Below are positions 4,476 to 51,300 of a DNA stretch of 64,000 nucleotides, one piece after another. The notes beneath the pieces are model-generated. The model made no database searches, had not been told where the DNA came from, and saw only the letters and a list, made by a program, of their open reading frames with translations. The translations under genes were made by a program, and so were the position numbers. The stretch lies in the sequence record PQ287644.1; one strand, 5' to 3'. The stretch's first letter is position 1. The number at the start of each line of letters is the position of its first letter.

Positions 4476-5969
4476 ATGCTTAAAACTTTTGTTGAATGCG
4501 AAGAAAACTACGACGCTTATTTGCGTCCTGCGATTTATGATTCCATTAAGGCTGTATTGAACTTCTACGGGCTAGACTCCGCCACCGCTATTTACTACAA
4601 CGGTGAGAATGAGATTGCGAAGACCGTAGGGAGCAATATGAGTGACGGTCCTCACGCGGATCGGTATACCGATGGGATTTTCAGGAACAAGATCTTTATT
4701 GTTCCTGAGGTGAACCGTAGTGAGGCTTGGACGAACCGTCGTCAGATGGTAGAGCGGCCCGTACTGTACAACAAGGAACTGGGTATCCTGTTGTCCCCTA
4801 CGTTTGAGAACAAACGGATTGATGTCAAAGTCGTCTCGATGTTCAACTCGGAGAACACTGCTCGGCAGATGAAAGACCGTATGAACCGGCTCAAGGAGAA
4901 CCAAGTCGTTGACTTCACCTTCTCCCCAACGACTCATATGGTCATTAATCCTCCTATTCTGGAATTCCTGGAGGTGATTTACGACCTCTTGAAGAAGAAC
5001 AACCCGTCGGTACCTGACCCGTCTGAATGGTTGGGTAAGATGTGGCAGTTCCCAGTGCGTGTGATCAGTAACGTAGCGGGTAACCACAAACGGGTAGTTA
5101 TCCCGCTTAAACAGAACCGGGTTGGCATTCAGTTCTCCGAACCCTTTGTAGCGAAGACGAATAAGAGCGCGACCTATGGTCGGTGGGAAGTGGAGTTTAC
5201 GTACAGCTTCTTCTTCAATGATTTCATTGGGTGGGAGTTTGAGTATCCCCTGAACATTTATCAGGATGAAATACCCAGTCAGTATATTCCGAGAGTCCAA
5301 CCTCAACATGAATTACCGGAGTTCATTAAAGCCGCTCCTGAAGTAGAAGCCGGTCGGGAAATTATGTTCCCGGAAGGGTTCAGACACACCCCCTTCTATT
5401 TGAAGCTGCCTAAGCACGATCCTTGGGCGTGGCCTAACTTCGATTGGATGCAACCGGTGATCCAAGCACGACTCAAAGTCGAGGATGAACCCACTCAGGT
5501 ACTTTGTAACCTATTTGATATTCCTGACTTTGTTTGGTACGACAATGCTAAGGCGTATTTACTTCGTCGTCATGCGATTGCCTTCCAGCATTTTGAAACC
5601 CCTTTTCTGATTCAAGTCTTTGAAAATGACCAGTTAATTGCCCCTGAACACCTGACCCTGGATGAGAAGGGGTCTATAACGCTTCACAGCAGGCCTGTTT
5701 TAAACAAAACATATCGAGTAGTGGTAACCCTCGACTATGCGATAAGAGACTATTCTGACGCATTCTGGAGCGATTTAATCGATCATCCTGAAGACTGGGG
5801 TATTTTGCCTCAAATCTTTGATTGGTTCGATTTCAGTGAAGTGCCTGAACCGTGGTACTTACACATCAACTACCTCCGGAAACACATCCATAAGGGATGG
5901 GGTCGTTGGACCGAGCGCTTTAACCGATATGAGATGGGCTTTGGTTTGTGGGCCTACCGGAACGATTAA
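4476..5969 (+). CDS. Virion structural protein (phiKZ-like conserved block)
   Basis: ~497-aa ORF. Position between the internal-head genes and DnaB matches recalled phiKZ-like synteny. Confidence 0.55.
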   Translation: MLKTFVECEENYDAYLRPAIYDSIKAVLNFYGLDSATAIYYNGENEIAKTVGSNMSDGPHADRYTDGIFRNKIFIVPEVNRSEAWTNRRQMVERPVLYNKELGILLSPTFENKRIDVKVVSMFNSENTARQMKDRMNRLKENQVVDFTFSPTTHMVINPPILEFLEVIYDLLKKNNPSVPDPSEWLGKMWQFPVRVISNVAGNHKRVVIPLKQNRVGIQFSEPFVAKTNKSATYGRWEVEFTYSFFFNDFIGWEFEYPLNIYQDEIPSQYIPRVQPQHELPEFIKAAPEVEAGREIMFPEGFRHTPFYLKLPKHDPWAWPNFDWMQPVIQARLKVEDEPTQVLCNLFDIPDFVWYDNAKAYLLRRHAIAFQHFETPFLIQVFENDQLIAPEHLTLDEKGSITLHSRPVLNKTYRVVVTLDYAIRDYSDAFWSDLIDHPEDWGILPQIFDWFDFSEVPEPWYLHINYLRKHIHKGWGRWTERFNRYEMGFGLWAYRND

Positions 5970-9351: not shown

Positions 9352-9438
9352 GTAATTTATCACTTAATGTATTTATTGTATTGTAAACTGGCTGACAAGC
9401 GGGTGGGGAAAGGGGTTTATTTCCTAATAAAGAGTGGA

Positions 9439-9600
9439 GTAGTTACGGAGTAACTACGACTTCCTTGTTCTATCTTTTGATCTTTCTCTATTCTCTTTAG
9501 ATCTTTCTTTTGATTTATACGGAATACAGAGAAAGGGAAGAGAGGGAATACCCCTTATACCCCCGAAAGGGGGATGAGGAATAAGGAAAGAGAACCGTAG
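9439..9600. other. Structured intergenic element (pyrimidine tract then purine tract)
   Basis: gtagttac-gga-gtaactac hairpin; ttccttgttc pairs with gaataaggaa; ctttctct pairs with agagaaag; cccc-gaaa-gggg GNRA hairpin. Confidence 0.4.
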
Positions 9601-9697
9601 GTTAATCAGTATTCCAACACTTTCTGATTAATACATTCAGCAAGCAGAGCTGAGAAGATTGCTCTGCCATTATCGATTCACTACCGGAGTAAATACC

Positions 9698-10380: not shown

Positions 10381-10426
10381 AAACAGTAAATGTTTACGGG
10401 CATACCCACTTACTACCCCATTACTG

Positions 10427-10460
10427 ACCTCCCTACCTAAGCTGAGCTTAGGTAGGGGGT
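10427..10460. terminator. Intergenic hairpin (CCTACC family)
   Basis: ccctacctaagc-tga-gcttaggtaggg. Confidence 0.7.
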
Positions 10461-10491
10461 GTTATACCGCATTTAAGCTAAAGGGGAAATC

Positions 10492-10504
10492 AAACCTATA
10501 TTAC
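10492..10504 (+). promoter_or_regulatory. Putative early (virion RNAP) promoter
   Basis: aaacctatattac contains the phiKZ early-promoter core TATATTAC. The motif recurs at 16236, 29245 and 58408. Confidence 0.6.
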
Positions 10505-10546
10505 CGGCGTGATTATACCCAATGGATCATTTAGGAGATTCGGTTT

Positions 10547-19187: not shown

Positions 19188-21472
19188 ATCCTAATGCACC
19201 CATCCCCGGGGCTTCTGGTACGGCGATGGGCCTTGGCGCCCGTCAAGGTATGTACAACCAGATGTCACCGTCCATGCAACTCCGTGGTGTTCTCGAACAC
19301 GGTCTGCAAGGGAATAGTCAGGGTGGGGGTGGAGGTTCCATCCATTGGGAACGCTACGGTAACTCCCTGTATGAAGACGCTGCGCTCCGGGAGATCCGGG
19401 AGAATGCGAATTCTGAAATTGACAGTAACCAACTCTTCTTGGAGAAGTTTTCCCGTGCTGGGGTGGAATTGATTCAGCAGCTAGGAAGACGGCAAGGGGC
19501 GTTCTATAACGAATACCGGGAGACCTTAGAAAACTTTCGTTTTGTTCCCAAAACCCCGGTTAAATGTCCCATTCGGGATGAATTCGTTAACAACCTGAAC
19601 AAGTACCCTGAAACCCTCCGCTTTATCTCAACGGCCTCTGTGCCGATGTTTGTCCAGCGACTGATTGTCCTGGGTAAACAAGGGTCTTCGGAGTTGACGA
19701 CGTCGGACTATATGGGATCCGCAGTCTTTGCCTATCGGTCGGTCTTAACCATGGAGATGATCTCCTGGTTGTGCAAGAGTCCGGCAGGTCGACAGTTCAC
19801 GTATAGACTGACCCCTGAAATCCAGAAAATGATCGCTAACCTGGAGCATTTCAAGGATACGTTTAGCCTCGCCTGTAACACGTTAGGGTGTACGAATCCT
19901 TATGCGTCCCTGGTGTACGAGGTGAAGACGCCAACCACGACGGAGAGCCATCTGATCCACGAAGCACAAACCGCCTTCCTTCATTCTAACTTTGGAGCGA
20001 ACAACGGCGTGGAATCCCAGAACGATCCAACCACTGAAGACATCTTTGAAATGGTGAGGAAACGGGCTGAGCTGGCCAGACGGGACAACCAGGGGTATAC
20101 TCGCCCTGAAGATCCTCGGTTCCAACCCCCGGAAGTCCAACGCTGGAATAAGGTCCGGAATGATCTTGAAAACCTGACCGTTAAGAACAAGGATGAGTTT
20201 GATCTCACCAGTTATTTCCATTACATCGGTAAACCCAAGCATTATCTGATTCCGGAAACTGATTGGAAGCGGATAAAGAAGGTTTATAAACGCCACCCTG
20301 AACAGTCTGCTCAAGAAGAGAGTATCCTCCCGGGTTGTTTCCGTATTGTGATTATTGACCTGGAAAAGGATAACGGCTGGTTCAGCACTGTTGTAAGGAG
20401 TCGTACACTCGATATGGTCACTGCTCTGTCTAGCCCTGAAAAGCTGTTGCCGTTGCTGGAAGCGACGGAAGACGGTAATGACGTGGTGGTCCTGCCGGTG
20501 GAGAAGGTGGTAGAGGATACCAAGTCCCTGGAGATCACGCTGGAGACCTGTGAAGAATTGGAAGGGATCCCGGTGGTTACGGTGTCTGAAGGCATTGTCA
20601 GCGCGACGTCTAAGAAGCTGATGGCGGCTGTGGTGACGACCAACACCGCCCTGAGTAAGAACATGCCAGGGACCAACGCCACGTCGTTCTCCGCTACGAT
20701 CTGGGATACCTTCACCTGTTCCGACGCTCGGGATAAAATCCGACTCAAGAACGATCTCCCGTTCCTGTTTAAAGACTTTAAGGAGGGCGATCACCCCCTG
20801 TCGTATTACCACCGGATGAAAGCGGTTAAGGAGTACTTGGATGAAGGGATTCTGGATGAGGAGTTGGGTGAGTTCATTCGGACTCGTCTGACCGCAACGG
20901 TGAATGCGTGGTTCGTCAGTTCCCTGGGGTATGAACGCTTACCCAGCTCACGGAACCATCTGTCGGTAACCGACATCGTCGAGGACTTCGACGAGCTGGA
21001 TAAGATCCTGGAAGAAGATCATCCTGAAGGGTACCGACGGTTCAATGAACCGGGAGGGTCGGGCAACTACCTGACGGAACAAATGAAACTGTTCGTTCCC
21101 GATGGGAAATACGATGGTGTGGAAAGTGAAGAGGGTGGGCTAATCCAAGAAGCTCAGAAGAAGTTGGAACTACCGTTGGAACGCCGCTTCCACATCACGG
21201 TGATCAATAAGCGCAATGGGCCGTTGCCGGATCCATCGGGAGAACCCTTGATCATTAAGCGCAGTCGATTCCCGGAGTACTTCGATCTCATAGAGAAAGG
21301 ATTCAAGGGAACGATGAAAGAGACGGATAACCTGGACGTTATTGATAAACTGATTCAATTCTCCGGAGGTGATCAACTCTGGTTATTCAGTTACTCAGCC
21401 GTCGATAAGAATGTCGCCACTCTTCGGGTGGTCAGTCGAAGAAGTCCCTTGGTCCTGTTGGATCTCTTCTGA
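19127..21472 (+). CDS. Large conserved hypothetical protein
   Basis: 781-aa ORF overlapping the end of the RNAP gene. Confidence 0.65.
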   Translation: MAMANILRPSGQVNRGTVSIDPNAPIPGASGTAMGLGARQGMYNQMSPSMQLRGVLEHGLQGNSQGGGGGSIHWERYGNSLYEDAALREIRENANSEIDSNQLFLEKFSRAGVELIQQLGRRQGAFYNEYRETLENFRFVPKTPVKCPIRDEFVNNLNKYPETLRFISTASVPMFVQRLIVLGKQGSSELTTSDYMGSAVFAYRSVLTMEMISWLCKSPAGRQFTYRLTPEIQKMIANLEHFKDTFSLACNTLGCTNPYASLVYEVKTPTTTESHLIHEAQTAFLHSNFGANNGVESQNDPTTEDIFEMVRKRAELARRDNQGYTRPEDPRFQPPEVQRWNKVRNDLENLTVKNKDEFDLTSYFHYIGKPKHYLIPETDWKRIKKVYKRHPEQSAQEESILPGCFRIVIIDLEKDNGWFSTVVRSRTLDMVTALSSPEKLLPLLEATEDGNDVVVLPVEKVVEDTKSLEITLETCEELEGIPVVTVSEGIVSATSKKLMAAVVTTNTALSKNMPGTNATSFSATIWDTFTCSDARDKIRLKNDLPFLFKDFKEGDHPLSYYHRMKAVKEYLDEGILDEELGEFIRTRLTATVNAWFVSSLGYERLPSSRNHLSVTDIVEDFDELDKILEEDHPEGYRRFNEPGGSGNYLTEQMKLFVPDGKYDGVESEEGGLIQEAQKKLELPLERRFHITVINKRNGPLPDPSGEPLIIKRSRFPEYFDLIEKGFKGTMKETDNLDVIDKLIQFSGGDQLWLFSYSAVDKNVATLRVVSRRSPLVLLDLF

Positions 21473-22357: not shown

Positions 22358-22789
22358 ATGCTTACGCCAGATGAAGCGAAGAAACGTCGAGTAAGAGTGG
22401 CTGAAATCTTTAGTCTGATTTCGGAAGCTAATCAGCTTCTGGTTAAGGTCTCAGCCACCGCGAATGCTAACAGGAGTGAGGAGATGTTTGCGTTATCCAT
22501 GTCTCTCCTGGAAGAGGCGGATACCAAGCTGAACGCGTACAAAAAGGAATTCCCCCATTGTCTCTCCTTGAAGTACAACCGTTGGATGCAAGTCGGGGTG
22601 AATTCTGAGGGTGGGGTGAGGAATAAACAAGGGCTTCCTCAACCCCCTCTCTTGACTGAAGACAATCAGCTCTCCCCTGAGTGGGTGACTTGGTACAGTC
22701 AGGTTATGGGGTATTCCCATTCCCATGCCTTGGAGGTGGGTGAACTTCTGTTGAATGCGTATCAGAACCTTCCTCCCTCCGAAGTGTAA
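22358..22789 (+). CDS. Hypothetical protein
   Basis: 143 aa; RBS aggga. Confidence 0.55.
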   Translation: MLTPDEAKKRRVRVAEIFSLISEANQLLVKVSATANANRSEEMFALSMSLLEEADTKLNAYKKEFPHCLSLKYNRWMQVGVNSEGGVRNKQGLPQPPLLTEDNQLSPEWVTWYSQVMGYSHSHALEVGELLLNAYQNLPPSEV

Positions 22790-28578: not shown

Positions 28579-28654
28579 TCCGTGATAGCTCAGTAGGTAG
28601 AGCAACTGTTTCGTAAACAGTAGGTCCCGGGTTCGAACCCTGGTCACGGAACCA
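28579..28654 (+). tRNA. tRNA-Thr(CGU)
   Basis: 76-nt cloverleaf: acceptor TCCGTGA/TCACGGA, D stem GCTC/GAGC, anticodon stem ACTGT/ACAGT with loop TTCGTAA, TTCGAAC T-loop, encoded CCA. Confidence 0.97.
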
Positions 28655-29187: not shown

Positions 29188-29222
29188 ACCCTCCTACCTC
29201 CTTTACAGGGAGGTAGGAGGGT
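29188..29222. terminator. Intergenic hairpin (CCTACC family)
   Basis: accctcctacctcc/ggaggtaggagggt. Confidence 0.75.
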
Positions 29223-29244
29223 TTATTACGGTATAGCGTATTTT

Positions 29245-29257
29245 AAACCTAGATTAT
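29245..29257 (+). promoter_or_regulatory. Putative early promoter
   Basis: ttttaaacctagattat, 30 nt before an ATG. Confidence 0.55.
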
Positions 29258-30009: not shown

Positions 30010-30777
30010 ATGAAACCTTTTCGTGTACCTGCTGGACGTCTCAGTAAAGAACGACTGGAATGGGTCATCCAGAATCGTAAAGAAAAGAAACGCGAATGTC
30101 CCTTTGGCGCGGCTCACTTCCCCAAAGGAACGATCGCGGTGTTCGAGTCCCCAACCCAGCGTTTTTTGAAAGAGGACGAACGTGAGTTTCCTGGTCAGCG
30201 GTACGCAACGTTCGAAGCGGAAGTGGAGGGTGTAGTCCCCAATGGGCCGAACAGTTGGGTGGCTGTTCTAAAGGACCGTGCGGCGATTAACGTCGACTGG
30301 GCGCGCAAGATCATTAAACGGGGGGATGGTCCTCTCCGCGCTGAGGAGAATGACGTGGAGGACAGTCTGTGGAAAACCAGAGCCACCCACCCCCTGGATC
30401 CTGACACCCACCTTCCCATCAACAAACACCCCAACTACTACTACATCGACTCGATCTATCATTTCATCTACGGAAAATTGGAAGAGGTTAATAAAAATAA
30501 CTTCGCCACTCATCTGATCGATGTGGATAAGTTGATTTCGCTGATGTGCGGCGATATCATTCGTCAGGCAACCTCCTGTGGTGATGGTGTTTACTGCCAT
30601 TATCTCATCAGTAAGAAGAAGTTTCGCAAGATCTTCAACCGTTGTCTGCCGCGTGCGCGCACCAGCAGGCGTAAGGAAGCTGAACGTCAGGCCAGGATCG
30701 AAGCATTCGAATACAACAGGTCGTTTGATGACCGTTATGAAGACGATTATGACGACCCGGGAGTGGAAAATGACTGA
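30010..30777 (+). CDS. Hypothetical protein
   Basis: 255 aa. Confidence 0.6.
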   Translation: MKPFRVPAGRLSKERLEWVIQNRKEKKRECPFGAAHFPKGTIAVFESPTQRFLKEDEREFPGQRYATFEAEVEGVVPNGPNSWVAVLKDRAAINVDWARKIIKRGDGPLRAEENDVEDSLWKTRATHPLDPDTHLPINKHPNYYYIDSIYHFIYGKLEEVNKNNFATHLIDVDKLISLMCGDIIRQATSCGDGVYCHYLISKKKFRKIFNRCLPRARTSRRKEAERQARIEAFEYNRSFDDRYEDDYDDPGVEND

Positions 30778-31267
30778 TCGAATAATTCAAAATGAAACAC
30801 TTCCCCCTTCTCCTAACGATCACCGTAAGGTTACTGAGGATATGAAACTCAATCTGCGTGAAGAGTTTGAGTTTCATATGAAGAAAAAACATCTTCAGCC
30901 GGTGAAGGGTGCAAACAAAGCGGAGGTCTACCTGGAGAAGGACCAGGAAGGGAAATACAAAGACAAGAGAACCTTCTGGATGTTCAGAGGGTTCAAAATT
31001 TATCACAATAACGTACTGTTCCAAAATAACGTCACTCAAGAACACTATACCAACCCGATTGGACGTTACGTTATTGGGAGGGTAGGTGAAAATGGTGTCG
31101 TGTATATGTCACCTCGACCTTACAGACATTCCTCCAGAGCGCGCGCTCTTACGGAAGCTAAAAGGTTAAGGGCGGAGAATAACGCTACATTCGCGGTCTT
31201 TCGTTGCATTGAAGTACTACACGCCCCTGAACCTGAAGACCACTCCACTCTGTCTTTAAAGGAATAA
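30770..31267 (+). CDS. Hypothetical protein
   Basis: ATG at 30770 with RBS ggag; 165 aa. Confidence 0.55.
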   Translation: MTDRIIQNETLPPSPNDHRKVTEDMKLNLREEFEFHMKKKHLQPVKGANKAEVYLEKDQEGKYKDKRTFWMFRGFKIYHNNVLFQNNVTQEHYTNPIGRYVIGRVGENGVVYMSPRPYRHSSRARALTEAKRLRAENNATFAVFRCIEVLHAPEPEDHSTLSLKE

Positions 31268-31276
31268 CCCCTGCGT

Positions 31277-31333
31277 GAAGGAGGGGACTCACGTAAATGC
31301 CGTTAAATCACACGTGTAGTCCCCCAACCCTTC
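31277..31333. other. Extended intergenic hairpin
   Basis: gaagg/ccttc, ggggact/agtcccc and cacgt/acgtg stacked stems. Confidence 0.45.
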
Positions 31334-31432
31334 TTTAAACGGGTCTTCGGTAGAACCGGGGTGGTTTACTTAATAGGTCGTTTAGCCTTTAAGCTACCGA
31401 GAGTGACAGATTAGATACCCCATCACTGTATT

Positions 31433-32284
31433 TTGGAGAAGGTTGTGAAACATAAAGAAACACCCTTTCAACGAGCCAGCTGTGGTCATGTCCTTCAGGT
31501 CGGTGACAACGGGTCTTGCCATGTGGGGGATCGCGGGACCGCCATCGCTGGAAAAAATAGCCTCGCCACCGCTGCGAACAATGGACACGCTGTTTCTGGA
31601 GACTATGGGACTGCCACCGCTGGAAAGAAAGGGAAAGCTACCGCTGGAGATTGGGGGACTGCTATCGTTGGACTCGATGACGTCGCGTCTGCTGGAAAGA
31701 ATGGAAAGATCCACATCCAGTACTTCGACAGTGAAGCCAATCGTTACCGCACAGCAGTTGGATATATCGGTGAGGACGGTCTCGAACCTGGCGTTCCTTA
31801 CCAATTGGATGAAAACCACGAGTTCGTAAAGGGAGACATTGCCATGACAAAATTCTCTACAGAGGGCCACGTGACTATACTCTTCCGAGGATTGGGTGTA
31901 GGTCTTATCAACGTCCAGGTCGTAAGGGTCACTAAGGGTATAGGACATCCCAAACCCTTTTTCCATATTGAGGGATCTGAAGACAAGGGTTACCGTTTGC
32001 TTCATAACGGGAGTGAATGGATTGATCAGGTCTTTGAGGCTAAGAAAGCTGTACTCTTCATTGAGTCCCTCTACCCCCCTGTGACACCCGATAAAGAGAC
32101 CGTGAAACTTACGGTGCCTGAGGATCAGCAAATCCTGGTTAAAGTACGTCGTGTGAATAAGCTGGCCTTGGATGCTGTTGTGTTCCACATCGATACCCTG
32201 GGCGGTGCGTATCAGGTATCTTATACCGATCAGCTGACCTCCGATCTCAATCAATTGACTCATGTTGAGTTAGTGGCAATTTAA
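31433..32284 (+). CDS. GDxGTAxA octapeptide-repeat protein fused in frame to a second ORF (ATG 31844)
   Basis: Repeats GDRGTAIA, GDYGTATA, GKKGKATA, GDWGTAIV, then YQLDENHEFV. Internal RBS plus ATG at 31844. Confidence 0.55.
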   Translation: MEKVVKHKETPFQRASCGHVLQVGDNGSCHVGDRGTAIAGKNSLATAANNGHAVSGDYGTATAGKKGKATAGDWGTAIVGLDDVASAGKNGKIHIQYFDSEANRYRTAVGYIGEDGLEPGVPYQLDENHEFVKGDIAMTKFSTEGHVTILFRGLGVGLINVQVVRVTKGIGHPKPFFHIEGSEDKGYRLLHNGSEWIDQVFEAKKAVLFIESLYPPVTPDKETVKLTVPEDQQILVKVRRVNKLALDAVVFHIDTLGGAYQVSYTDQLTSDLNQLTHVELVAI

Positions 32285-32295
32285 GGACGTCAATC

Positions 32296-32541
32296 ATGGC
32301 TAAAAAGAACCTTAAGGTGTTCAAGACCCACGGGGAATTCGATACGGAGGTGATTCGTCGTGCTCGACTTATCCTCGACGCCAGGGGTTACCGGGGGAAG
32401 ATATGTGTGAACGCACTCGGTGAAAGTCCTGTATGGGATAGAGCGGGCCGTACAGTAGACGGTCATCGTCTGATCGACGACGACACCATCGCCGAAGTGG
32501 CTCGGGAGGTGGTTTATGAGAGCCTTGATCGAGGAGAGTAA
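32296..32541 (+). CDS. Small hypothetical protein
   Basis: 81 aa; RBS aagga. Confidence 0.55.
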   Translation: MAKKNLKVFKTHGEFDTEVIRRARLILDARGYRGKICVNALGESPVWDRAGRTVDGHRLIDDDTIAEVAREVVYESLDRGE

Positions 32542-32589
32542 GTTTTAACACGTTGACCGTATTATATACGGACAACATGTCGTTTTAAT

Positions 32590-32900
32590 CCGCGTCTGCG
32601 GGTCCCGCCTGAACTTAAGGGTGATAAGGTGTGGTACTCGTCGAGTATGAGCTTGGCAAAGCTCATACTCCGAACCCTATGGACGGTATAGCCGCTATCG
32701 TCAAGTCACACTGTTCAGCTATTGACCTGGACTTCAGTCTCCTTTTCGGTGCTGTCGGCGGGAAGGTTGTCGGACGGTGGGGCGGCTTGTGAAGGTGCTA
32801 AACTAGCGCTGGTTGAACGCCTAGCAAGTTAAGGGGAGGAGGGACAGTCATCGGCTCTAAGCGGGTGGGTTCCTCCTCCCCTCGCTCCTTTTATTTTTTG
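32590..32900 (+). ncRNA. Candidate ~300-nt structured ncRNA
   Basis: No ORF of 60 aa or more in 32580-32960. Helices ctgaac/gttcag, gtgtg/cacac, a 12-bp perfect hairpin, gacg-atag/ctat-cgtc and cctttt/ggaagg, then a terminal 11-bp stem with U-tract. Confidence 0.55.
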
Positions 32901-32987
32901 TCTTAATGCCGTGTTACTCGACCGGTTTCTAACGGATACAGGCAGTGCGAATATTATGTCTTATCCCTGACTTACCAAGAGGTTATA

Positions 32988-33467
32988 GTGATGTCGAAAA
33001 ACAACGATCAGAAGAACCCCTCCACTCCTGAGGACGAGAAGGCTAAAGCGGTAACCACCCCTCCGGTGACTCCTCCCGCCCAGGCAGCCAGCACTGCCCC
33101 TCAGACGCATCCCAAGGTCTCGGAAGACGAGAGTGAAGAGGATAACCAGGACTTCGACAACATTCTGATCAATGTACTGTCGCTCTATGACAACGGGGAG
33201 TTCAATAAAGAACTCCTTATTGATATGGTTGAAGAAGTCCGGAAGGTTACCCGTCCGGGTCTTATCCCGGAAGAATACTACATCGACGTCGCCGTACAGC
33301 GTTATGTGGAATTCGCTAAACGCAAGAAGATCGATCTGAAAAACCTGTCGATCCTGGTGGGTAATCCTGAAACCTCGGTAGAACTGCGTTCGCTGAACTT
33401 CTACCGTGCAATGGAAGGCCTGGCCCCGACCTTCTTTATGCCGTACATCATTGAAAGTAAAGAGTAA
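32988..33467 (+). CDS. Hypothetical protein, probably highly expressed
   Basis: 159 aa; disordered acidic N-half; C-ending codon bias. Confidence 0.65.
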   Translation: MMSKNNDQKNPSTPEDEKAKAVTTPPVTPPAQAASTAPQTHPKVSEDESEEDNQDFDNILINVLSLYDNGEFNKELLIDMVEEVRKVTRPGLIPEEYYIDVAVQRYVEFAKRKKIDLKNLSILVGNPETSVELRSLNFYRAMEGLAPTFFMPYIIESKE

Positions 33468-33480
33468 CACCGAATAAACT

Positions 33481-33518
33481 CCTAACCCCTAGCCCCTTTA
33501 ACAGGGCTAGGGGTTAGG
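33481..33518. terminator. Hairpin between convergent genes
   Basis: 15-bp stem cctaacccctagccc/gggctaggggttagg. Confidence 0.75.
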
Positions 33519-33539
33519 GGGTATAACGTTTATTTTTGA

Positions 33540-36512
33540 TTAAGCAAAGGGATTGGTATCAGGACTGTTCTCTTCAGGATTGGTCCCATCCTCATTGCCT
33601 TCTTCACCCTCAGAAGAGGTTTCTTCTTCCTCCTCTCCTTCAGTACCTGCTTCAGAACCTTCCTCTTCCTCTATACCCTCCGGTTGTTCCTCTTCCCCGG
33701 GAGGGGTATTCTCTAAGGCGTTCTGATCCCCTTCAGGGAGATTTGCCTTATCCCTGGCTTCTTGAAGGTCTTTATCAGCCTTATCGATCTTCTTGGCGTG
33801 TGCCTTAATGACCTTAGCATCCGCATCACGAGTCCCTGCAATCAAGGCTGCCAGGAACTCCCCGACATTCTGACGCTGACTCACAACGGCGTTCACCAAG
33901 GAAGCAAGACCACCACCCTTACCATCGTTGAGGATGTCATCAAATGGCATCGGGAGGTTATAACGCCTGAAGGCTTCAACCGTGAGGACTGACTTCACTT
34001 GCTCGTTAATTGCTGTCAGGTTCTTGTTATTACCTTCTCCATCATCGGATTCAGGAATACCCAAGAGCTCAGCAATCTGTTTCAAGTTACCCGAATGACC
34101 CGCCATAGCGACCCACGATTCCACCAGCTGACTCACCGTATCCAAACTGTCCTTGAGTTTAGCGGTTGTTTCAACAGAACTGGGGATGGGGAAGTGGGCT
34201 TTAAGGTTAGTCAAGAAGTCGACGAGAATGACCTTAATGATCTCTTCGTCAGACCCTTCCAGTTTCTCCTTACTGTCCGGTGACCAGAGTTTCTTATTCT
34301 CCGAGATCTTGGTCACCAACTTCTTCATTAAAGGCCCGTTCACGTGAGCATGCTTACGTTCGAAGTCAATAATGAAGTCTGCGAGGCGTTCTTGCCAGTT
34401 AACGATTTGGTTCAGGAGCATCTGGTGTTCAGCCAGGGCCTCAATCTGGAAGTTGTTCTGATCGTCACTGACATCCAACCAACTCCGAGACAGGTGGAAG
34501 TAGTTGGCGATCTTGTTCAACAGCTCCGTACGACTATTCTGATCGACCGGGCGGAAGATGTTCTTTTCCAATTGATCGAGCTGAATATCCGAGGCGGGGA
34601 AGTAAGGGTTCTCACCTGCGTTGACTTTAACCGTTAAGGAGTTCTCCCTCAAGGTATCCACAATCATGGGGACTGACAGTTGAGATGTTGAGAGAATACT
34701 GTGCAACCGTGGGTTAGCTTCAAAGAACGCTGCCCTAGTCGCCGCAATACCCGCAAAAGGCTCTGCGTCGTTCTCCTGGAGGTTAATCGTCATTTGGGTG
34801 TGGGGTGTAGCCGCCTCCAGGTTCGCCAACGCGTCAGCGAGGTCTAAGGCCGCTAAACGAGCAATGTGCATTTTAGCCATTTGAGTCAACGACTGACCAA
34901 TCCCTAAACGGTTATAGTTCAGGGCCATATAGGTCATTGCTTCCCCCGGGACATACAAACACCGAATCCCCTGTCTCCGGAAAATGCGTTGCAGGAAGAT
35001 CTTGTTGGCTTCCTCATCGATCTCAATGCTGATGTTCTCCCCACGACCACTGAGGACTGACTGCATGTACCGTCGAATGATATTCGATTTCGAGATCTCA
35101 ATGAACTCGGTCATATCGAAATCACATTCTTTCCCTTCTTGGATTTGACGAAGCTGTTGAACCAGGTTGTTCGTACTACCGTTTTTAGGGCGGTTAGCAA
35201 TCATACTGGCATTGCTTCGGTTACTCTGGTAGTACTCGAAGTCATTCGTATTCTTCAGGAAACTCCCATCCCGAGGATCCGTGAGTAGGATAAAATCCGT
35301 TTGAGTTCCATTACTCCCGTTAATGTGAATCGGAATCACCGCTTCACTGGGAACCTTGTAGGTAATCCCCCGTCCATAGGGTGCGATCTTCAAGGCATCG
35401 ACGGGTTTACTGAATTGAATGATCTGACTCACCGGATTCCGTTGAGGGAACAAACGGTTACTCAACTCGTTCAATTCACCTTCCGTTAAGTTAACGGTAG
35501 TGGCTTGAGGATCAGCAGGCTTCTTACGTTTGCGTTTCTTACCATCCGCATCCGTATAGTGCTGTTGATCATCTCCAGGGTTCGTACGAGCCACCAGAGC
35601 GGTTTGGATAATAAGGTCCAACCCTTCCGCTCCCGTTACCGCGGCAACATTCGACCGACGTTTACTTTCCTCGAACTTCTGGAGGTACAAGACCGCTGGG
35701 TTATCGGTCAGGGTAATATCAATCAGCTGAGCCAATTCCTTCGAGACAGAGTCTTTATCGTCTTCAAAGATATTGAATTCCACTCCAGCATTCTGAGAAG
35801 AAGGGTTCAGGAAAAGGGATTCTAGACCACTGACGGTGTTATTTGTATTATGACTGGTTCTATTACCGACAAAGACACCTTTGTTCTTCACCCGGACTTT
35901 ACCGTTGACGACTACGAACTCATGACTTAGCATTTCTTTAGCCTGGGTCATGAACTGTTCGTTACCGGCAACATCCCCGGATTGCTCCGCACCATTAATC
36001 AAATAATCGAGACCTGGTCGACTCAAGTTAAACAGCACATAACTCCCGGTATTGAAGAGAATATCCGCGATCATTTCCCTCAAATCTTTCTCGATCTTAT
36101 AGTCATTGGTATAGTAGCCATCCCAGATGGTGAGGAGTTCATCATGCAATTTTGCATTTTTAATAGGGGACGGTTGGGTGTCGTAGGTGAGGATTTTGTC
36201 TTGCTTCCCATTGGGGTAGAGTAGACACGTCTGCCAGATCAAGGTGGCTTTGTCGATATACGGCGTGATTAACCGCAAATCAGTAGCCGCGTTAATGTTG
36301 TTGCTGATGATATTACTCAGCTTTTCCAGTTTGTAAGGGTTAACCGTCCGATAACCGTTGATCTCATCCTTTTCAGGGGATGAACCGTTACGAGGCGTAG
36401 CATTACGCAGGGTCGCTGCAACCACTGGGTTTTGAGTCGTCAACGATTTACGCAAAGCAGCAAAATCCACCTGCGTGTTACCCTTGGACTGTCTACGAGA
36501 TGTATCGACCAT
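33540..36512 (-). CDS. Probable portal protein (phiKZ gp129-like)
   Basis: ~990 aa, ATG at 36512 with RBS gaggt. Divergent from a baseplate-like gene as in recalled phiKZ-like synteny. Several G/S/A-x-E sites and an acidic tail. Confidence 0.55.
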   Translation of the reverse strand: MVDTSRRQSKGNTQVDFAALRKSLTTQNPVVAATLRNATPRNGSSPEKDEINGYRTVNPYKLEKLSNIISNNINAATDLRLITPYIDKATLIWQTCLLYPNGKQDKILTYDTQPSPIKNAKLHDELLTIWDGYYTNDYKIEKDLREMIADILFNTGSYVLFNLSRPGLDYLINGAEQSGDVAGNEQFMTQAKEMLSHEFVVVNGKVRVKNKGVFVGNRTSHNTNNTVSGLESLFLNPSSQNAGVEFNIFEDDKDSVSKELAQLIDITLTDNPAVLYLQKFEESKRRSNVAAVTGAEGLDLIIQTALVARTNPGDDQQHYTDADGKKRKRKKPADPQATTVNLTEGELNELSNRLFPQRNPVSQIIQFSKPVDALKIAPYGRGITYKVPSEAVIPIHINGSNGTQTDFILLTDPRDGSFLKNTNDFEYYQSNRSNASMIANRPKNGSTNNLVQQLRQIQEGKECDFDMTEFIEISKSNIIRRYMQSVLSGRGENISIEIDEEANKIFLQRIFRRQGIRCLYVPGEAMTYMALNYNRLGIGQSLTQMAKMHIARLAALDLADALANLEAATPHTQMTINLQENDAEPFAGIAATRAAFFEANPRLHSILSTSQLSVPMIVDTLRENSLTVKVNAGENPYFPASDIQLDQLEKNIFRPVDQNSRTELLNKIANYFHLSRSWLDVSDDQNNFQIEALAEHQMLLNQIVNWQERLADFIIDFERKHAHVNGPLMKKLVTKISENKKLWSPDSKEKLEGSDEEIIKVILVDFLTNLKAHFPIPSSVETTAKLKDSLDTVSQLVESWVAMAGHSGNLKQIAELLGIPESDDGEGNNKNLTAINEQVKSVLTVEAFRRYNLPMPFDDILNDGKGGGLASLVNAVVSQRQNVGEFLAALIAGTRDADAKVIKAHAKKIDKADKDLQEARDKANLPEGDQNALENTPPGEEEQPEGIEEEEGSEAGTEGEEEEETSSEGEEGNEDGTNPEENSPDTNPFA

Positions 36513-48319: not shown

Positions 48320-51300
48320 ATGGATCCGTTTAAAATCGTTCAATTTGATATTCGTGGAACGCGCCCGGAGAATAAGATCATCGGGGAGAAAATGCTGATC
48401 AAGGATAAGACCTGTCCTTGGTTGATCCCGAATGGGTCCCCGTTCTTTGCTGAACCTGGCCTGTTCACGTTGTATGACGAACGGGGTGCTGAGATGACCC
48501 TCAACCGGGATTACTGGTTGGAGGAAGCCTTTATCCCGTTCTGTGAGATCAGCGGTCGGAATGTTTGTTGTTTCATTCGGTTAAGTGAGAGTATTCGTCA
48601 GAACAACGCATTCGTTACCGGAGACTACCAAACCATTGGGGCGTGGTTCGTACCGCGTAATAACCTGGATGAATGGCTGGAAAAAATGCGGGAAGGGAAG
48701 ATTCCCATTGAGTGGGAGAAGGTCTTCGGTGTTCCACCCACCCTACCGCCCGAATACCATTTGCATAAAGCTGATACCGAAATTGGTGATTGGTATGAGC
48801 TGACGTTCTTCCTGGATACCATGGCGAACATTTACCGGAGCCGAGATCCAGAGTTGGAGGATCAATCGGAAGTTGTGATCAATGAGGCGTTCACAAGGCT
48901 CAGGAGCTTCCGGGACGCCCAAATGCGTCGTCTCGTCGAACACGACAAGAATTACAACGCCCCTCACCTCCAAACGAAGACCAACCTTAACCTGGGCAAT
49001 CTGGATAACTTTGCTACCGCTACTCCTGAACAGGATAAGGCTGGTACGGCTGATAACCTCTTTAGTACCACACTGGGGGTTAAGGAACTGGTCAGGGGGT
49101 ATACGCCGGATACGTCGGCTTCCATGCGTTCAGGAATTATTGCCATTAGTCGGTTTGGGGGAACGGATTATATCCCTCCGGGTATTAGTGGTTCGTTTGA
49201 AGGTCTGGGGGGTGTTACCCCGGACTGTGCAGCGGTATTGGAACTGAATGATAACCTGGTCTTTATTCGGGCTCATTACGACGGACGGACGGAAGGGCTG
49301 TATTACACTGTGGTTCGGAATCACTTGAGCCTGAATCCCGACGTTTCCTTCACCGGGTATAAATACCAACCCCCGTCGTTAACGGCCATTGGCTTCGTAC
49401 CTAACCGGGTCTTTACAGGGAGTGGTCGGACTATCATCATGGTAACCCGGGATGGGACGAACCAGGTGTACGCCGCGCTGACCAATGGTACATTGGATCC
49501 TTCCGCGCATGTGTTTGTCAAATGCAACATTGATTTGGCTATCCAAGATCTGGGGACGTCAGTTCGTCTAACGGAGTGGAGTCAAATACACACGTTGGGT
49601 AATTGGGTCTATTTGTTTGTGACAGCTATAACTGAAGGTCAATGGGGTGGTTGGGGACATAGTCGTACACGGGCCTACAGGGCACCTCTCAGCGCGATTA
49701 AGAATGGCCAGCCTCTTACCTTCAGTCGTGTTAAAGTCTCACTGACGAACGTCCCAGGGGCCTTACAGAGCAATGTTGACTACATTGAGTTCACCCCCGC
49801 TCCTCCAGACGGTGAATTCAGTACCTACGGCCCCATTACCTTTGCGCCTTATAAGGCTAAGAAAGGGGTTAAGGGATCCCAACGACGTCCCCTGATGTTC
49901 TTCTCTGAATCCAGTGACATAGGACCTCAATATTGTTCCATGCATTACTTCGGGATGATGTTCTTTACGGGGAACATCAATGGAGTGGATCGTGTGACCG
50001 GGATGTACATCGATTGCAGTTACGATTTCAACCCTGAAACAGCGACCTTCGTGGTGGTTAAACAACCCCCCGCACAAACCGTTGACCTGAGCAAGATCAT
50101 TAGTGTAAACTCAACGGCCTCTGTGCATTATGCAGGTATCAGTGACGTCTTCTTCAACATCTCTGACCACTCCAGTCATCTCCTGTTGGAGAATAAGGTG
50201 ATTGTCGGGATGTCACGTCTAGGGTTGAGGGTCTCCTTCCCGGGGTTGTTTAGTCGCTTGCAGTTCAACAAAGACCCGAGTGTAACTGCCAGTGGGATGT
50301 TGCGGGATTACATGCACGCGGACAATGCGAACTTCTCGGGGATGGGGGTGTGGGAAACGCCCAGTTACCCTATTAAGAACGGAGGGCGAATCAGTGCAGT
50401 GGGGTATGAACTTACCGGTGAATATTTCTGGGCAGACAGCACTGTGGATCATAACCGGTCGTTCTTCTACCGGAAGGTCAGCGGTGAATACGCTGCGCGT
50501 CCTGGGATTACCAACAGTAACTACCCCACCTTATTGACTCGACCGATCAGTGCGGAGGTGTACGAGAACCGGTTGGACCGTAATACTTCCCTGATCAGTG
50601 TGACCGGGAGTGCAGCGTTCCTGACCGCTGAAGGGATTGAAATGGGGAACAGTTGTTTCTCTGTAATGGGAATGAACCATTTCGACGACCTGGCCTCAGG
50701 GGTTGAATCCGATACCACATGCCCCAGAGAGTTTACCTTTAAAGCCCCTAAAGGAAATGGGATCGTGTTATCCTGCCCTAGGACCTTCAGTCGGGTAATG
50801 GACAGTGGGGATCAAACCTTTACTCTGAAGGGTGAAAGCCATTGGGGTGTTAAGCGTAACGTCATGGATAAACTGATCCAGTTGATCCCCGCTACCCTCA
50901 GGGAGAAATGGGCGGTCGAGCTGATAGTGATCAATCCTGTCAGTGGTAAAGGGTTCAGTCGGATGAACTACGTGCTGGCGTTGGTTCATACCCGGGACAT
51001 CGAAGGGGGTCAGTATGTGGTCAGGAGTAAACTGTTGGCCTGTACACCGGTGATTGGTAATCCAGTCTCGGGGGTCTACCCGATTGATGACCTTACGATT
51101 CTTGATCAAACCGCGTTTATCACCACGGTGAACAACAGTGGGGCTGGGAATGAGTGGAGTGACACGGAAGCGGATGTTGTGGCGTGTCCTCAGGTGTCGC
51201 TTTATGTGGATGAGGCAACGAATACCCTCTCCGGGCGTATTTCGTCGTTGTACAACGTCCGAAGCGAAGCCTTGGGGTTCAACAAAGCCGTCCTGACCTT

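Follow-up and report, generated by a model that had tools for sequence, protein, structure and literature searches.

A constrained, Elvirus-specific non-coding segment carries two strong hairpins and a terminator at the end of an accessory gene block

Results

The window analysed here (64,000 nucleotides from sequence record PQ287644.1) belongs to a Pseudomonas phage EL-type genome (Elvirus, Chimalliviridae), that of a nucleus-forming jumbo phage. On its plus strand the ORF101 homologue (81 aa, 32296-32541; PHROG 26983, E 6e-7) is followed by a non-coding gap of ~450 nt (32542-32990) and then by the ORF102 homologue (158 aa, 32991-33467, plus strand). The gap holds the element studied here (32575-32900), which the initial annotation had described as a highly structured, undescribed jumbo-phage non-coding RNA with its own terminator. 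Over the 900 bases around the element, the window matches Pseudomonas phage HHBS8_1 at 100% identity and the Elvirus phages EL, phiRU, PaBa1, GXNNE2, MIZ-Pa99 and vB_PQ1 at 93-97%. As had been noted, the gap is free of open reading frames between the end of ORF101 at 32541 and the start of ORF102 at 32991, and it was reproduced by independent gene calls on four metagenomic contigs; ORF101, the last gene before the element, was predicted as a gene in every metagenomic contig checked. ORF102 is the first gene of a conserved module, and in distant relatives also it adjoins ORF103, a 1000-aa virion protein encoded on the minus strand and convergent on ORF102.

The plus-strand genes ORF100 (E 1e-38) and ORF101 (E 6e-7) were backed by PHROG matches, and the minus-strand ORFs annotated in HHBS8_1 had no PHROG support. 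The GenBank records of HHBS8_1, vB_PQ1 and MIZ-Pa99 annotate genes at 31394-32263, 32290-32466, 32562-32666 (minus) and 32722-32832 (plus); the frames of the two small ORFs that fall inside the gap (32562-32666, minus, and 32722-32832, plus) are not conserved. The long ORF102 annotated in EL starts within the terminator described below and depends on its T run and, because T-run length varies between genomes, this longer ORF is not conserved. Several further differences and features were observed outside the gap. About 460-590 nt at window positions 30700-31300 are missing from EL, including most of the ORF at 30578-31267 (PHROG 17352, weak), and in two public runs the contigs lack 30760-31223 or 30760-31350, indicating that both forms circulate. 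EL ORF100 encodes 331 aa compared to 283 aa in the window, with ~144 extra bases in the EL gene (window ~31600-31750; EL record 105371-106354). The convergent genes ORF102 and ORF103 are separated by 72 nt containing a 16-bp hairpin (33481-33518), which probably terminates both. Other long stretches with no convincing ORF lie at 9352-9658 and 10381-10546 (EL annotation gaps of 349 and 444 nt) and had no Rfam match.

Features of the gap

The gap opens with a 46-nt spacer containing the palindrome ccgta-ttata-tacgg at 32557-32571, where the initial annotation had placed it just upstream of the structured region. It is broken by a C>G change in two of the seven aligned published genomes (GXNNE2 and phiRU), and no repeats of it beyond chance were found in the window. 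A 6-bp GC-rich hairpin with a tetraloop follows on the plus strand (32588-32603); it was present in both the single-sequence fold and the consensus fold and is invariant in 11 genomes. The next plus-strand feature is an interrupted hairpin (32634-32689), in which a one-sided internal loop of 11 nt separates an 8-bp lower stem from a perfect 12-bp upper stem (32643-32670) capped by the loop GGCA. The perfect inverted repeat (32643-32654 with 32659-32670, 4-nt loop) was already recognized in the initial annotation, and the aagggt and accct sequences proposed there to form a pseudoknot were likewise found in place. From 32691 to 32831 the plus strand is G+U-rich and conserved, with predicted local stems. 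The terminator (32832-32899, plus strand) ends the element, and a final spacer (32900-32990, plus strand; diversity 0.029) carries the ORF102 ribosome-binding site aagagg and a TATG at 32955-32958.

Two long-range helices had been proposed to enclose the first domain, ctgaac (32609-32614) with gttcag (32713-32718) and gtgtg (32629-32633) with cacac (32707-32711). All four sequences are present, but their pairing is broken by common polymorphisms. Position 32716 is C in 5 of 11 genomes and G in the other 6, which places a G-G mismatch in the closing helix, and position 32630 in the gtgtg/cacac helix is also polymorphic among the 11 genomes.

Folding of the plus strand of the whole 326 nt gave -132 kcal/mol (z -3.9) and the minus strand gave z -3.7, compared to a genome background of mean z -0.9 (sd 1.6) that was drawn from a thin sample of 250-nt windows and is noisy (12 shuffles). 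When parts were folded alone, high stability was seen for 32588-32690 (z -3.8), for the hairpin at 32634-32689 (-23.9 kcal/mol, z -5.2) and for the terminator (z -4.1), and no excess folding energy was seen in the middle part (32691-32783, z -0.7; 32671-32831, z +0.2). Because the excess stability is confined to two modules (32634-32689 and 32832-32882) when the element is folded in parts, the term "highly structured" applies to these modules and not to the whole; the 160 nt between them folded no better than shuffled sequence.

The predicted terminator

The sequence supports a plus-strand terminator hairpin at the end of the element. Its stem, within 32832-32882, is a 14-bp polypurine/polypyrimidine helix (32832-32845 with 32869-32882) with 10 G-C pairs and one G-U, and it is followed by CGCUCC and then by UUUUAUUUUUU, a T-rich run at 32889-32899. 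At -38 kcal/mol this is the strongest hairpin of its type in 50 kb of EL. Two changes in the inner stem preserve pairing on the plus strand only, and the minus strand has no U run after the hairpin. The U run starts 6 nt past the conserved stem; a 3-bp extension would leave 2 nt, but this extension is broken in 3 of 11 genomes. The terminator lies 286 nt past the ORF101 stop codon, compared to only 12 nt past the stop for the other clear EL terminator. GGAGG-rich polypurine/polypyrimidine hairpins are common in EL intergenic gaps, and these GGAGG/CCTCC hairpins are a phage-specific style of terminator or stabiliser. Examples of this style at window 29189-29221 and in EL gaps at L027 positions ~4780-4830, 22400-22470 and 48340-48385 have short T runs after them, and such hairpins often lie only ~20 nt before the next start codon.

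No clean alternative antiterminator pairing was found for the 5' arm, and a riboswitch-like antiterminator was rejected on this ground.

Coding potential and sequence constraint

All six reading frames of the element contain stops. A 53-codon frame (32631-32792) is preceded by a fair ribosome-binding-like sequence, and its codon 29 is changed from TCA to TGA (32715-32717) in 6 of 11 genomes; a 36-codon frame (32722-32832) is frameshifted in phiRU. Changes in these small frames are mostly at codon positions 1 and 2 and mostly non-synonymous. A small protein gene was therefore rejected, as no frame is kept open in relatives, and a decayed gene was rejected since the six-frame translation showed no similarity to the relatives' loci.

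Across an alignment of 11 Elvirus copies, only 13 of the 244 sites in 32588-32831 were variable (5%; diversity 0.015, and 0.011-0.020 in the middle part), compared to 93 of 516 third codon positions in ORF100, ORF101, ORF102 and ORF103 (18%; diversity 0.066; Fisher p 6e-7). Diversity was 3-7 times lower in the element than at neighbouring third codon positions. The comparison with neighbouring spacers (21 of 213 sites variable, diversity 0.039) was marginal (p 0.075), and the least conserved part of the region was the spacer at 32542-32587 (diversity 0.051). Divergence of the element between the window and EL is ~2.7%, near the genome-wide average, so that the constraint, while real when measured against the local neutral rate, is not extreme. 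Local recombination could have contributed to the low diversity.

The initial annotation had looked to covarying helices for confirmation, and these were not borne out. At a divergence of only ~4%, too small for a real test of covariation, the consensus fold showed one compensatory pair among 106, five single changes that a wobble pair accommodates and three that break pairing. As much compensatory support was seen in 48 of 500 shuffles, and searches found no intermediate relatives. The sole compensatory change (A-U>G-C at 32650/32663) is inside the 12-bp stem. The same hairpin (32634-32689) carries a G-C>G-U change at 32668, and its pair 32652-32661 is broken in 5 of 11 genomes. Because the consensus fold was fitted to the sequences, changes were also scored on a fold computed from the window sequence by itself. 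Of 17 changes scored on the plus strand, 6 disrupt pairs (null 8.3, p 0.17), compared to a single break on the minus strand (null 3.6, p 0.035). Within the 3' half, changes at 32819, 32848 and 32865 keep pairing on the plus strand only.

Distribution

The element is present in a single copy per genome, and a search for a second copy in EL returned only palindromes matching themselves. Rfam 15 at gathering thresholds matched nothing in the whole window except the tRNA-Thr at 28579, the element region at E up to 10 gave only miRNA-model noise on the terminator hairpin, and ARAGORN found no tmRNA, in agreement with the earlier failure to recognize tmRNA, 6S, RNase P or SRP RNA. Blastn at E 10 against 50,697 phage records returned Elvirus matches only. 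When the syntenic loci of 10 relatives were searched with nhmmer and blastn, no match was found, and none was returned by a covariance model (R1) run on these loci, on 10 IMG/VR records of relatives (7 near-complete genomes and 3 fragments) and on 14 metagenome loci, or by an exact 24-mer scan of JGI metagenomes (0 matches). A jumbo-phage-wide RNA is contradicted by this distribution, in which the element was found in the genus Elvirus only.

Searches with the flanking genes gave a similarly narrow picture. Word-based protein searches with ORF101 and ORF102 returned near-identical relatives only, and among the 50,697 phage records (E 0.01) ORF102 had relatives only in Elvirus and no phiKZ-type homologue; it also matched no Pfam family. 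The nearest other lineage shares only 66-67% identity in ORF103, and the ten IMG/VR relatives share 51-66%. These ten have no gap upstream of their ORF102 homologue and none downstream of ORF103, and no ORF101 homologue was found in the relatives' loci. Because the homologues of ORF081 (window gene 20009-21472) and ORF102 lie only 0-3 kb apart in relatives, we regard window ~21.5-33.0 kb as an Elvirus-specific accessory block. It comprises small genes, including the tRNA-Thr and an SspB-like gene, and ends, next to the conserved module, with the element.

Several known types of element were considered and set aside. A type III toxin-antitoxin (ToxIN-like) locus was rejected, with no tandem repeats before the terminator and no Pfam match for ORF102. 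A group I intron joining ORF101 and ORF102 is unlikely given the lack of Rfam signal, the absence of ORF101 from the relatives' loci and the internal terminator. The GGA count, judged by eye, was near expectation and gave no sign of an RsmA-type GGA sponge.

Promoters and transcripts

An EL-type putative early promoter motif, ATTTTAAACCTAGATTAT, lies on the plus strand at 29240-29257, 30 nt before ORF098. The 18-nt motif ATTTTAAACCTASATTAT, annotated "putative phage promoter" in the EL record, has three exact plus-strand copies in the window (16231, 29240 and 58403) compared to 0.05 expected, and across the complete EL genome the 11-nt core TTTTAAACCTA is present exactly 4 times, each time on the plus strand. 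Just upstream of the motif at 29240, a polypyrimidine/polypurine hairpin (29189-29221) closes the preceding unit, and no strong plus-strand terminator was found between 29.3 and 32.8 kb. This arrangement suggests that the 29240 motif probably starts a transcription unit, ORF098-ORF101, that is closed by the element.

On the plus strand of 32542-32600 we found no EL promoter motif and no sigma-70 site, and promoter word searches there gave nothing useful. Of two candidate words, TGACCGTA is enriched in EL (24 copies compared to 6.4 expected) but has no common flanking motif and looks like ordinary coding sequence, and TATATTAC showed no enrichment. A minus-strand sigma-70-like site (32588-32561; TTAAAA, 16 nt, TATAAT; 10 of 12 matches) reads leftwards into ORF101 antisense; the number of sigma-70-like sites in this region is at chance level.

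In the only run recorded as transcriptomic (X10, 5.6 Mb of contigs), a single contig was found within 30500-35500. It extends over 32394-32796 and so includes the final 148 nt of ORF101 and 255 nt of the gap. These data are contigs, from which ends, strand and level are not readable, in which separate transcripts may merge and to which DNA carry-over is possible. Because the contig begins 148 nt inside ORF101, a discrete 300-nt transcript is not indicated; the contig is compatible with a stable RNA continuous with ORF101. No published EL transcript map was found in the literature.

Discussion

The non-coding segment described here is real, specific to its genus and under constraint, and it carries two strong hairpins and a terminator. 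We class it as most likely the structured 3' end of a phage operon and possibly a 3'UTR-derived RNA; an elaborately folded new non-coding RNA is not established.

The explanation that we favour, with about even confidence, is that the element forms the extended 3' untranslated region of an early operon that is specific to Elvirus and starts at 29240. Transcription would start at the promoter motif there and run through ORF098-ORF101, and the transcript, judged from sequence, would meet no strong plus-strand terminator before the hairpin and U run at 32832-32899. Synteny places this terminator exactly where the accessory block meets the conserved ORF102/ORF103 module, and at this border it would shield the module from read-through of early transcription. 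Selection appears to maintain the ~290 nt that separate the ORF101 stop codon from the terminator. Both the interrupted 12+8-bp hairpin and the terminator hairpin probably either block host RNases or serve as their processing sites, in which case the 3' end of the message would outlast the coding part and may accumulate as a stable fragment, with the conserved, weakly folded middle part left free to bind protein or another RNA. The promoter, the continuity of the transcript and the role of RNases are all inferred in this scheme. Against it, an untranslated tail would have no obvious need of 290 conserved bases, the EL promoter annotation is putative, the U run is offset from the conserved stem, and the constraint is marginal relative to the neighbouring spacers.

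The element can be compared to several characterized systems. It resembles intrinsic (Rho-independent) terminators of the EL style in its GC-rich 14-bp stem, GGAGG-type 5' arm, long U run and operon orientation, but differs in its 23-nt structured top, in the 6-nt spacer before the U run and in lying 290 nt past the stop codon, where ~10-20 nt is usual. Some bacterial small RNAs, such as CpxQ and SroC, are derived from 3'UTRs and use the terminator of the parent mRNA. The element is similar to these in being a segment between a stop codon and a predicted operon terminator, with a long U tail and conservation beyond the needs of a terminator; it is longer (~300 nt) than is typical. In phage T7, RNase III processing hairpins lie between early genes. 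The two stems and one-sided internal loop of 32634-32689, located behind a gene in an early polycistronic unit, recall these hairpins, although there is no sequence similarity and the likeness is a resemblance only; cleavage of 32634-32689 is hypothetical. Among giant phages, 201phi2-1 sRNA005 and the phiKZ small RNA upstream of gp182 are 5'UTR-derived (PMC11512511). Like the element, they belong to giant Pseudomonas phages and are short untranslated segments that stop at a terminator placed directly before a gene. The element differs in its greater size, in its restriction to Elvirus and in the gene that follows it, which is outside the gp182 family of tail genes.

A separate gene for a non-coding RNA of ~310 nt, with its own phage-RNA-polymerase promoter in 32542-32587 and its own terminator, and with a role in trans such as sponging or scaffolding a factor of the host or the phage, would account for a constrained non-coding sequence that has two very stable hairpins plus a terminator and is represented in an RNA library by a contig that stands alone within 5 kb. 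Small RNAs have been reported in the related giant phages 201phi2-1 and phiKZ (PMC11512511), and a middle or late promoter of EL could have escaped notice. We nevertheless consider a separate gene unlikely. Neither an EL promoter motif nor a plus-strand sigma-70 site was matched, the spacer that would have to hold the promoter is the least conserved part of the gap (diversity 0.051), and the X10 contig begins 148 nt within ORF101; the middle part lacks excess structure, covariation is at chance level and no homologue was found outside Elvirus. The initial proposal of an undescribed non-coding RNA is partly supported, with respect to non-coding character, constraint, the plus-strand terminator hairpin, the lack of an Rfam match and presence in an RNA library. 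It is not supported with respect to elaborate folding throughout, the closing helices, compensatory changes, a promoter of its own or a discrete transcript.

It is also rather improbable that the segment has no RNA-level function beyond its terminator, being either a DNA-level site (such as a palindromic protein-binding site) or a young, undiverged remnant of a lost accessory gene. The near-average divergence from EL (~2.7%) and the location inside a variable accessory block are consistent with this, as are the perfect palindrome and compensatory change, which are symmetric between strands, and the single-sequence fold test, which gave no plus-strand support (6 of 17 breaks, p 0.17) and a slightly better minus strand. 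However, diversity 3-7 times below neighbouring third codon positions speaks against it, the six-frame translation is unlike the relatives' neighbouring genes, and in the 3' half the wobble changes fit only the plus strand.

Finally, it is very doubtful that the element is a 5' leader of ORF102 ending by premature termination, with the terminator setting how much transcription reaches ORF102. The element does lie upstream of ORF102 on the same strand, in the layout of the 5'UTR-derived small RNAs of 201phi2-1 and phiKZ, and 8 of 11 small RNAs in 201phi2-1 arise by termination in a 5'UTR (PMC11512511), but 91 nt with a possible start signal of its own separate the terminator from ORF102, a search for antiterminator pairing by the 5' arm gave nothing clean, relatives have an ORF102 homologue without any such leader, and ~310 nt exceeds the 250-nt limit used in that study. 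ORF102 is also not homologous to the phiKZ gp182 family, the site of the conserved small RNA and, because it has no phiKZ-type homologue, the element is not the published small RNA conserved in EL.

Little of the RNA biology of nucleus-forming jumbo phages has been charted, and here an element probably closes an early accessory operon at the border with a conserved module. If it is not a riboregulator, the results still correct the annotation, which in HHBS8_1 and related records includes three small ORFs called spuriously within the gap and in EL gives ORF102 too great a length, and they revise the boundary of the early unit. A bolder, and in our view unlikely, proposal is that Elvirus phages make an abundant, stable, genus-specific RNA of ~300-500 nt, from the 3' end of the early operon or separately transcribed, whose conserved, weakly folded core would bind and titrate a host or phage factor during infection. 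Should such a stable RNA with a partner exist, it would give nucleus-forming phages a new riboregulator, restricted to one genus and unrelated to any RNA family.
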